Below the pieces are notes generated by a model that worked only from the letters and a program-made list of their open reading frames with translations, was not told the DNA's origin and made no database searches. Positions 51,553 through 54,533 of a stretch of DNA of 64,000 bases are shown here, one piece after another. The stretch covers positions 3,844,001 to 3,908,000 of the forward strand of contig JBLDXI010000013.1 in the NCBI GenBank assembly GCA_047495785.1. Direction: 5' to 3'. The translations under genes and the position numbers were made by a program. How positions within the stretch are numbered: the first letter of the stretch is position 1; each line of letters begins with the position of its first letter. This stretch comes from Lepidodermella squamata. Taxonomy: Eukaryota; Animalia; Gastrotricha.

Positions 51553-51657
51553 TGCAAACAATAATAACTACTGTCGACAACAATTATATATAAAAATAAC
51601 TATTACCTACAGCAAAAAAATCAATAATTAGAAATAATGGAAAATCCAATAAATATT

Positions 51658-52899
51658 TCAAGCCAAAGAAAGAGTTGCTTCACTACGGTAATAGCCATTC
51701 GAGTGGTTATATTCACCCCGCTTTGATATGTGAACCTCCGAAAGAGTAACTTCCCCGAAATCAAAATTGCCAAAATCCTGGGTAATTCAAAAGTCAACGC
51801 TTTAATTTTCAATTTGAACAAATTTACCTTGAGAATTTTCGATGCGTCAAAAGCTATTCTCTTATCGACTTGTTTTCGCTGCCCAGTTGCAACGGAAACT
51901 TCATCCGGCGATTTGCTGAACAAAGAATTCATCAAGGTAATGTGCAGTTTGACCTGTTCACTGATGCTACTAGGACCCTGGCCGGAGTGCAATAACCCAC
52001 AGGCCTTGAATCTCTTAACAAGGCCGTCAGCCAAACGTTGCAAATTATTCGAATGATCATTGGGCTTTAGTTTTGCATACAAAACATCAACACAACTCGG
52101 ATCGTCATTCATATACTCCAAGCCAGAAACGTGAACTTTCATCGGCTGATTATCGGTTAGAGGCCTTGAAAATTAAAAAAATTTTTACAAAATTTAGGTG
52201 AATTAGCAAAAAAAATTACTTGACCAGCTCGTCTTTGCATTTTTTCAGCTCATCTATAGCAGTTTTGACCTCAGCGCCATCGTTCAACAGTAGCATGCAA
52301 AGAGTGAGATGTAATCGTTCGGGCCGTTGAAAAACCGGGCTTTTCACGCCACATTCTTTCTCGACCGTCTCCCGAAAATTTTCAAACGATTCCTTCATTT
52401 TTTCGGAATAAATTGGAATTGAAAGAAAATGAGTTGCTTTCAAGCGCTTTTTAGCTGATTCAACGAGAACTTCGATGCGAGAGTGGCAGGCAAGAACGGC
52501 CCGGGAAGAACTGGCCGTGATAACAACAGGTCCTTTCGCCCCTGCCTGCGGTATGTGAATTCTCGCCTCAGTTTCCTGCTCGGTTCGTCGCTTATTTTCG
52601 CCACCTCTGCCAATTAACGAGCCGTAATACGCAGTCGGAATGTTCAGCTCGAGTCTGTACTCATTTCCATTGTATTTCACATCAAGTCCTTCGGTGTTAT
52701 TTTCTTCGTCATCTCGAGCAGCTGCGCAAGGGGGCTCATCCGAGTAGAGATCTGGAGTGTCCCACGCTGAGGTGAGACTGGTTGTTTGTTTGCTACTTCT
52801 CACCGCCGGTTCATCCTCATAGTCGCGCTGGCTAATGGCATGTAACTGCCGATAACAACGTCCATCAACCGTGACAAAATTCGGTTTTAAAATATTCAT
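51658..52899 (-). CDS. ASCC1: Activating signal cointegrator 1 complex subunit 1 (KH plus 2H-phosphodiesterase; 3 exons)
   Basis: MNILKPNFVTVDGRCYR, KH LIGRGG, THFLSIP, RLHLT, GLEYMNDDP and KLHITLMNS. Confidence 0.93.
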
Positions 52900-52933
52900 T
52901 TCTACAACAAAAAAGAACATTTGTATCACAAGA

Positions 52934-53755
52934 TCATTTATGCGATGTAACGATTTCTTTTAAATATGAAGAATCACGCAGTAGATTGCATTTGAAAACA
53001 GCAGAAAACGCAGAGAGAAATGCGGGTAATACCTCGTCGACGGTTATGTTTCTGCCCACCTGTTCGGTTAGTGAGGTCGCTTTTTTGTCGTTCAAACCGC
53101 AAGCGACAATGTGGTTAAACCATTTCAAATCCGTGTTACAGTTGAGTGCAATGCCGTGAGAAGTGACAAAACGTCGACAGTGAACGCCGATGGAAGCAAT
53201 TTTACCGGTTTCTCCAACGAAAACACCGACGTATGACGGGTGAAGAGTGCTTTGCACTCCGAATCCAAAGCAAGTTGATAGTAGAGTAGTATGCAAGCTG
53301 TCCACATAACACCGAACTCCGTTAATGTGAGGAAATTGTTTCAAATGAATTATAGGGTAAGCTACAAGTTGGCCAGGTCCGTGAAAAGTTATTAGTCCAC
53401 CACGTTCTACTTTAAAAACATCAGCTCCCTGAGACCTGATAAAAATCAATAATAATTATGTCGACTGGCTGTCAGACAAGCTTACGAGCTTACTTTAAGG
53501 AATTAAATAACTGGTCATCATATGACGAATCTTTTCTCAAGCCGATGGTGTAAACAGGTTTGTGTTCAAGCGTTAACAGGAAATTAGAATTATCAGTGGC
53601 AACAATAGAGGCAAGTGCTTGTTGAAGTCCAAGAGCCCAGTTGTATTGAGTTATTGCGGGTAAATGGATATGATGCAAAGTATTCCTGAAACATCATGCT
53701 ATTAAAATCAATCAAATGATTGTCTGTGCAAACATTACTTTACAAGACAGGACAT
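52934..53755 (-). CDS. LIPT2: Octanoyl-[ACP]:protein transferase (LipB family; 3 exons)
   Basis: LEHKPVYTIG, RGGLITFHGPGQLVAYPI, KIASIGV and VTSHGIALNC. First exon MSCLVK joins in frame via a 53-nt GT-AG intron (53686-53738). Confidence 0.9.
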
Positions 53756-54037
53756 TTAATCGATGGTGATTCCTTTACGCTTCAGATCAGCTTTTGCTTG
53801 TTGAATTTCGGCTTTGAGTTCGTCTGAAGCCTCAGGACAATCTTTAATGCTTATCGCCTTGTTAAATATAAATAAAATGGAGAAAATTCCGAACAGAACT
53901 ATCGCAATCGCGGGAGCGGCGAGAACCAGAACTTCGTGCTTTTTCACGAGGCTCGGAAAGAGATTGCCGTTGAGAATGCTCAACCAACTGATGAGGAAAA
54001 CTCCAAGACCAATAAACCACTCAAATGCTCTAATCAT
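53756..54037 (-). CDS. DPM3: Dolichol-phosphate mannose synthase subunit 3
   Basis: 93 aa with two hydrophobic helices, then KDCPEASDELKAEIQQAKADLKRKG. Confidence 0.93.
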   Translation of the reverse strand: MIRAFEWFIGLGVFLISWLSILNGNLFPSLVKKHEVLVLAAPAIAIVLFGIFSILFIFNKAISIKDCPEASDELKAEIQQAKADLKRKGITID

Positions 54038-54146
54038 TTCTAAAAACAAGAGAATGGAATATCGACAACAATTATGTAGAGATATTATACAAAGGCCGTA
54101 AATGATACAATATATCTATCATAGACCATAGACATGACCATAGACA

Positions 54147-54533
54147 TCAGCCCTTGTTTATAGCCTTTGAATTTCTTATTTGAGCGAATCGAGCGAAGGG
54201 TTTGTAACCATTTAAGGTATGAATATTAGACCCACAAAACTTTGAAAGATCATATATTTTCGGTAGTTCACTGTAATGGTAACTTCTATTTCGGCGACGG
54301 GGCGTGGACTGCAATTTGCTTTGTTCGAGCTGGTATATCACGTCAGATTCTAACGGATCGAGAGCAGGCGAGTCATCGTTAACTTTGACGGTTTTCGCGG
54401 AACTCTGATGAGAAATGGCGTTATCAGAGGCTAAACAAGCTGATTCATTGGTTGCGGAGGGCAAAAGTTCATCATTAACAGCATCAGCCTTCCTCTTCCG
54501 CTTCTTCTTCTCTGAGGAATCGTTTCCGGTCAT
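54147..54533 (-). CDS. Unknown 128-aa protein with basic NLS-like patch
   Basis: Open frame after a TTCCAG acceptor, containing EKKKRKRK. No family recognised. Confidence 0.5.
   Translation of the reverse strand: MTGNDSSEKKKRKRKADAVNDELLPSATNESACLASDNAISHQSSAKTVKVNDDSPALDPLESDVIYQLEQSKLQSTPRRRNRSYHYSELPKIYDLSKFCGSNIHTLNGYKPFARFAQIRNSKAINKG

Follow-up and report, generated by a model that had tools for sequence, protein, structure and literature searches.

A candidate bicistronic DPM3-LIPT2 mRNA within a spliced-leader gene array of the gastrotrich Lepidodermella squamata

The DPM3/LIPT2 locus and its RNA

The genes DPM3 and LIPT2 lie end to end on a 64,000-nt stretch of the Lepidodermella squamata genome (GenBank assembly GCA_047495785.1, contig JBLDXI010000013.1, positions 3,844,001 to 3,908,000; this whole stretch is referred to here as the window), where the stop codon of the first gene is followed by the start codon of the second. 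All coordinates given below are on the minus strand and count from the start of the window (Table 1). A previous reading of the locus, made without database searches (the sequence-only reading), had noted that no spacer separates the two codons and had proposed that LIPT2 is made from a shared DPM3-LIPT2 mRNA, either by leaky scanning or by reinitiation.

The upstream open reading frame (ORF) was identified as DPM3 by its match to Pfam family PF08285, in which residues 1-90 align to profile positions 1-89/90 with a score of 73.7 bits (cut-off 25; E = 1.4e-20). The LIPT2 exons were searched one by one, without joining them; exon 2 matched PF21948, the LplA/LipB catalytic domain, over profile positions 2-41, thereby covering the start of the domain, and exon 3 matched it over positions 54-199 with a score of 95.9 bits. 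The best protein matches of exon 3 were animal LIPT2 proteins, at 50-55% identity. Exon 2 was correctly said to lack an in-frame ATG; indeed, LIPT2 contains no methionine besides its start codon, so that ATG 53755 is its sole possible AUG start. A search of the whole window against Rfam returned no match.

Sequencing runs allowed the junction to be followed in both DNA and RNA. We take run X2 to be DNA because it shows no splice joints, and runs X1 and X3 to be RNA because the four introns of the stretch show up in each; X1 covers whole mRNAs, and X3 is 3'-biased. The TAAATG junction was read unchanged by an X2 DNA contig (53157-54429) and by an X1 RNA contig, confirming the zero spacer and ruling out a sequence error at the DPM3 stop, a concern that the sequence-only reading had itself raised.

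One RNA contig, contig 5 of X1 (344 nt), joins LIPT2 exons 3, 2 and 1 with introns 1 and 2 spliced out. It skips 53685-53737, which agrees with intron 1 if the 1-nt ambiguity of the joint is allowed for, and the predicted in-frame splicing of the LIPT2 ATG through a 53-nt intron is thus seen in RNA. Past this joint another 38 nt follow, which take the contig through the ATG and the TAA and over 17 nt of the DPM3 coding sequence (CDS) as far as 53775, so that upstream of its ATG the LIPT2 RNA matches the genome without a break for 20 nt. It follows that any LIPT2 5' end or acceptor must lie inside DPM3, and that no less than 17 nt of DPM3 CDS, together with the DPM3 stop, form part of the LIPT2 5' untranslated region (UTR).

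Coverage adds supporting observations. Contig depth in X1 was 272-342 over DPM3 and 331-422 over LIPT2, as compared with 26-160 over the neighbouring genes. In the 3'-biased X3, contigs reached about 590 nt from the poly(A) site in ASCC1 and about 675 nt in LIPT2, and the 487-nt mRNA of the gene upstream of DPM3 (an orphan gene, described below) was complete, while DPM3 had no cover at all. This lack is as expected if DPM3 is carried by the LIPT2 mRNA, where more than 700 nt separate its CDS from the nearest tail; a short separate DPM3 mRNA would be at odds with it.

Table 1. Features of the DPM3/LIPT2 locus and of the adjoining genes in the window
Feature	Position	Strand	Remarks
DPM3 ORF	54037-53756	-	93 codons + TAA (53758-53756); CDS 54037-53759
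TAA-ATG junction	53758-53753	-	DPM3 stop abuts LIPT2 start; seen in DNA run X2 and RNA run X1
LIPT2 exon 1	53755-53739	-	17 nt, MSCLV + 2 nt; ATG 53755-53753; spliced X1 contig
LIPT2 intron 1	53738-53686	-	53 nt, GT..AG; X1 joint 53684>53738, 'skips 53'
LIPT2 exon 2	53685-53494	-	From sequence, PF21948 match and RNA
LIPT2 intron 2	53493-53436	-	58 nt; joint 'skips 58' in X1 and X3
LIPT2 exon 3	53435-52934	-	Coding to 52937, stop TGA 52936-52934; PF21948 E = 4.1e-27
Weak AG inside DPM3 CDS	53774-53773	-	Codons AAA-GGA; candidate cryptic leader acceptor; 6/15 pyrimidines
Orphan-gene acceptor AG	54548-54547	-	Spliced leader joined; 12/15 preceding bases pyrimidine
Orphan gene, 128 aa	54533-54150	-	Upstream in array; kept in L001; no Pfam match
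Orphan-gene poly(A) site	54062	-	X3 loose end, run of T on + strand; 22 nt before DPM3 acceptor AG
Presumed DPM3 trans-splice acceptor AG	54041-54040	-	13/15 pyrimidines; 2 nt before ATG; inferred from its position after poly(A) site 54062
ASCC1-like acceptor AG	52903-52902	-	Pyrimidine-rich; 31 nt after LIPT2 stop; ASCC1-like ATG 52899-52897

Conservation of the layout and of an ATG-free DPM3

The protein collection contains only one close DPM3, with 67% identity. It is encoded on a 7.2-kb metagenome scaffold, L001, which carries the same gene order as the window: orphan, DPM3, LIPT2, ASCC1, DCP2 and NSUN5. Its LIPT2 is 64-72% identical to that of the window. The stop-start layout is kept in this relative, as the sequence-only reading had suggested checking, with the junction reading TAAcaATG (a 2-nt spacer) and being followed by a 14-nt mini-exon (L001 1001-1014) and an intron in the same phase. 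Among identical DPM3 residues the codons of the window and of L001 agree in 45% of cases, implying that synonymous sites are near saturation and that the two species are nearly independent observations. The recurrence of the layout in a relative this distant argues that it is more than chance. In the window the two spacers that flank the pair measure 109 and 34 nt, as against 40 and 51 nt, respectively, in L001; between DPM3 and LIPT2 the values are 0 and 2 nt.

One proposal did not survive this comparison. Since the two ORFs are in the same frame in the window, readthrough of the TAA had been suggested to yield a fusion protein; the 2-nt spacer of L001 places LIPT2 in another frame, and readthrough fusion as a selected product is thereby ruled out. 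We also note that the L001 LIPT2 has an extra intron (1571-1621) within what is the single exon 3 in the window.

An unrelated DPM3 locus (39% identity) has 3 internal ATGs and an ordinary 3' flank. Word-based searches for DPM3 homologues found only the L001 protein and one distant DPM3, the DPM3 protein had no exact record in public assemblies, and two metagenome scans found no DPM3 relative. None of 80 LIPT2/LipB metagenome loci, all at most 54% identical, had a DPM3 nearby.

Apart from its own start, the DPM3 ORF is free of ATG in every frame in both species, and since the spacer is AUG-free as well, the next AUG after the DPM3 start is that of LIPT2. When synonymous codons were resampled under local codon usage with the protein held fixed, the probability of zero additional ATGs was 0.048 for the window and 0.011 for L001. 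In-frame 282-nt windows taken from the other long ORFs of the window contain 4.3 ATGs on average and are ATG-free in only 0.6% of cases, and the neighbouring exons have 0.8-3.2 ATG per 100 nt. Codon pairs that are prone to create an ATG (E-W, S/L-W, N-G, H-E and D-E) use safe codons at positions 6, 17, 23, 34 and 72 of DPM3. Avoidance of ATG along the whole ORF fits scanning from the DPM3 5' end rather than from a short UTR; a monocistronic, leader-spliced LIPT2 mRNA with a 17-nt UTR would not need such depletion.

The LIPT2 exons themselves have 0.8-1.0 ATG per 100 nt in the window, below the neighbouring genes (about 2.1-2.2), and in L001 the LIPT2 exons are not depleted of ATG.

The surrounding gene array and its spliced leader

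DPM3 and LIPT2 belong to a one-strand array in the order 128-aa orphan gene, DPM3, LIPT2, ASCC1-like, DCP2-like, with more genes beyond. The ASCC1-like gene encodes a KH domain and an AKAP7-type 2',5' RNA ligase-like domain. A full copy of the orphan mRNA (487 nt) was found in X3 contig 20 (54062-54548), which ends at its 3' side in a poly(A) run and at its 5' side in a non-genomic leader, a 21-nt loose end behind 54548 that reads TGCGAATTAAATTTGTGTCTA on the minus strand and then runs into the shared AG. No copy of the leader gene was found in the window. A second poly(A) site, after ASCC1, was mapped from X1 to 51635.

The distance from acceptor to ATG is 0-2 nt at DPM3 and ASCC1 and 13 nt at the orphan gene. 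Addition of the 23-nt spliced leader at 54040 would give the DPM3 mRNA a leader of about 25-28 nt. The array thus uses a spliced leader and nematode-like junctions.

The DPM3/LIPT2 junction has a different appearance. A leader acceptor just before the ATG is present at the orphan gene (54548) and absent at LIPT2, for which the weak AG 53774-53773 is a possible candidate; an upstream poly(A) site ahead of the acceptor was found between the orphan gene and DPM3, with another site at 51635 after ASCC1, and not between DPM3 and LIPT2. Among the contigs listed, neither a leader nor a poly(A) site was seen between DPM3 and LIPT2. The statement that no pyrimidine-rich acceptor precedes the LIPT2 ATG holds, as the nearest AGs have 5-6 pyrimidines among the 15 preceding bases vs 12-13 at neighbouring acceptors. 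More broadly, every AG within the last 90 nt of DPM3 has at most 7/15 in both species, compared with 12-13/15 at the orphan, DPM3 and ASCC1 acceptors.

We also looked along DPM3 for a strong hidden acceptor and found none in either species. The best internal AG in the window (53825-53824, 10/15 pyrimidines) is polymorphic, being lost in a common synonymous allele (T>C at 53825).

The absence of an AATAAA after the DPM3 stop, noted in the sequence-only reading, was correct as an observation, although an ATTAAA overlaps the stop (53760-53755) and an AATAAC lies at 53655. The missing hexamer carries no weight, because both mapped poly(A) sites of the array lack canonical hexamers: neither 54062 nor 51635 has an AATAAA or ATTAAA within the 30 nt before it. 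The poly(A) signal of this organism seems to be non-canonical, so that a missing AATAAA is no evidence of a missing 3' end. The ATTAAA at the DPM3 stop draws on three elements, the final codon of DPM3, its TAA and the first letter of the LIPT2 ATG; L001 has ATTAAC at this place.

Several further observations concern the neighbouring genes. The orphan gene, expressed as a leader-spliced and polyadenylated mRNA of about 490 nt, shares the blocks ...DPLE.D.IY.LEQ... and ...YDLSKF...LNGY.PF.RF... with L001 (366-674). An X1 contig joins opposite strands at 54179-54248, inside this gene, which is probably an artefact of assembly or library. X1 contigs leave 52850-52973 uncovered, a segment in which LIPT2 ends and ASCC1 begins, with cover on both sides. 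The X2 DNA differs from the window in this gap (C>T at 52905 and AG inserted behind 52920), and the gap may come from allelic variation rather than from RNA processing.

Translation of LIPT2 and comparison with known systems

We propose that DPM3 and LIPT2 are carried by a mature bicistronic mRNA within a spliced-leader operon-like array, and that LIPT2 is translated mainly by leaky scanning, a reading that we consider reasonably probable. RNA continuity, the layout of the relative, the ATG-free DPM3 and the depth patterns all support the earlier proposal that LIPT2 is made from a DPM3-LIPT2 mRNA; from them we infer that one molecule carries both complete ORFs, and by which mode the second is translated. 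At the neighbouring junctions the transcript would be resolved in the usual way, through a poly(A) site, a spacer of about 20-30 nt, a pyrimidine-rich AG and an ATG. The DPM3/LIPT2 junction offers neither room nor signal for such processing, so that the mature mRNA would carry both ORFs, probably from the DPM3 acceptor to the LIPT2 poly(A) site. The majority of ribosomes would initiate at the DPM3 AUG, and a minority would skip it, scan about 280 nt that selection would have kept AUG-free in every frame, and meet the LIPT2 AUG next. Reinitiation after the adjacent UAA may contribute. LIPT2 is an enzyme needed in small amounts, and a low efficiency of leak may suffice.

Several points weigh against this reading. 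The link between the two genes rests on contigs, which are unable to prove a single molecule, and no read or cDNA spans both complete ORFs; contig depths and coverage holes are weak evidence that can only play a supporting part. The start context of DPM3 is not obviously weak, with G at position -3 in the window and A in L001, and its tagAAATGA is the same as that of ASCC1. The P values of the resampling are moderate, and only one relative with the layout was found. At the DPM3 acceptor itself no leader was observed. Finally, the X1 contig ends at 53775, the exact point where a leader ending in ...CTAAG and joined at AG 53774-53773 would diverge from the genome.

This last point leads to the alternative in which the leader is joined at that cryptic AG, within the last DPM3 codons, and the translated form of LIPT2 is a monocistronic, leader-spliced mRNA with a 17-nt 5' UTR. 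Each precursor would then give either DPM3 or LIPT2, and the run-through RNA would represent precursor or DPM3 mRNA. We judge this unlikely, even though the genome does use a spliced leader (as seen from the 21-nt non-genomic leader at the orphan acceptor) and the genes lie in an operon-like array. At 53775 the leader (...TAAG) and the genome (..gtAAAG) part after the shared letters AAG, and a contig end at this place is what an assembly-graph branch is expected to produce; however, a poly(A) branch at 53746, a variant missing from the list or a branch caused by errors at a depth of about 400-fold would account for the end equally well, and no leader-bearing contig at the site was found among the contigs listed. 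An AG followed by GAAT stands at the homologous codon position in L001, but DPM3 has conserved (K/R)-G residues here, which impose the AG, and the surroundings of the site are poor in pyrimidines (6/15 in the window and 4/15 in L001 vs 12-13 at real acceptors). The X1 depth of LIPT2, somewhat above that of DPM3, leaves room for a minority leader-spliced form. What this alternative leaves unexplained is the avoidance of ATG over the whole ORF in two species, the constant stop-start distance of 0-2 nt, and the lack of DPM3 in the 3'-biased library. Internal trans-splicing is possibly a minor parallel form beside the bicistronic mRNA. In a different use of the leader, it would donate the LIPT2 start by trans-splicing to exon 2; this was rejected, since the leader contains no ATG and the RNA has exon 1 cis-spliced to exon 2.

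It is quite improbable, in our view, that LIPT2 is produced from a bicistronic mRNA mainly by termination-reinitiation at an AUG 0-2 nt from the UAA. Inter-ORF gaps of a few bases favour this mode (PMC11291117), and the stop-start distance has been conserved (0 nt and 2 nt) while the neighbouring spacers drifted by tens of nucleotides. On the other hand, the final 120 nt of DPM3 lack UGGGA, motif 1 of the termination upstream ribosome-binding site (TURBS), in both species, and reinitiation is normally inefficient after an ORF of 93 codons. It would also have no need for an ATG-free first ORF, yet this is the conserved signature. The same ATG-free ORF is left unexplained if the two genes are expressed from overlapping separate mRNAs, through a LIPT2 transcription start site inside DPM3 or through polyadenylation of DPM3 just past its stop by means of the ATTAAA at 53760-53755, an arrangement to which we give very little credence. 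The overlap of this hexamer with the DPM3 stop speaks for it, and with 31-letter words a poly(A) branch at 53746 would presumably also end the X1 contig at 53775. But the hexamer is not kept in L001, and cleavage at 53746 would deprive LIPT2 of its start codon. Among the contigs listed, two poly(A) loose ends were found at other genes and none at 53756-53500, and the 3'-biased X3 contains no short DPM3 mRNA.

If the bicistronic reading is true, two unrelated housekeeping proteins, one a subunit for mannosylation in the ER and the other a lipoylation enzyme of mitochondria, share one animal mRNA, and the signature of this arrangement (an ATG-free first ORF and a spacer of 0-2 nt) has been kept across a deep split. 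Leader-resolved operons and true bicistronic translation would then coexist in a single array. For annotators this would mean that an absent acceptor need not imply an absent exon, and a short ATG-free ORF abutting the next start could serve as a search rule for more cases. The locus would also offer a testable system for ribosome leak or reinitiation past a 93-codon ORF in an animal. More tentatively, the DPM3/LIPT2 junction would be left uncut beside leader-cut ones and read by ribosomes that leak past the DPM3 AUG and perhaps restart at the UAA-AUG, and a minor LIPT2-only leader-spliced form, made at the cost of the DPM3 ORF, could switch between the two products; we regard this as rather doubtful.

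Bicistronic mRNAs are already known from Drosophila and green algae, and are rare in animals. The DPM3-LIPT2 pair is unusual in being nested in a spliced-leader array, in its zero spacer, and in belonging to a phylum for which our literature search found no paper on spliced leaders; the search also found no paper on a DPM3 bicistron.

The closest animal parallel is provided by the dicistronic Drosophila genes stoned and Snapin, for which scanning through an AUG-poor first cistron is described where PMC4528330 cites Wall et al. 2005; the same paper gives 159 dicistronic pairs in FlyBase. Like these, the present locus would have two unrelated proteins encoded by one processed mRNA, and it has a short first ORF that lacks AUGs and a conserved pairing. 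Unlike these, it lies in a spliced-leader operon-like array in another phylum, it has a zero spacer, and the second start is followed by an intron after 17 nt.

In green algae, bicistronic loci are translated by leaky scanning, and depletion of ATG upstream of ORF2 is a hallmark (PMC11291117, also PMC11892635). The likeness extends to the short ORF1 (a median of 291 nt in Auxenochlorella and 282 nt for DPM3), the ATG depletion upstream of ORF2, the very short spacers (in some algal loci stop and start overlap), and conservation of the loci over long distances. The differences are that our locus is from an animal and that the start context of ORF1 is weak in the algae and not obviously so in DPM3. 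The mutational evidence belongs to the algal loci; DPM3-LIPT2 is known to us as genomic sequence and as assembled RNA.

Spliced-leader operons occur in nematodes (including SL1-type operons without an intercistronic spacer) and in the tunicates Ciona and Oikopleura. The array described here resembles them in its tight one-strand packing, in the joining of the leader at a pyrimidine-rich AG just before the ATG, and in an upstream gene whose poly(A) site precedes the next acceptor by about 20-30 nt, as between the orphan gene and DPM3. It departs from them at the step from DPM3 to LIPT2, which has no acceptor and no 3' UTR; the RNA runs through, and this junction appears not to be cut into separate messengers.

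Viral termination-reinitiation, as in the caliciviruses with their TURBS and at the UAAUG of influenza B M1/BM2, likewise has a stop adjacent to the restart codon, as we find at 0 nt in the window and at 2 nt in L001. The DPM3-LIPT2 mRNA would differ in being a cellular mRNA with no TURBS-like UGGGA, and its ATG-free first ORF points to scanning.

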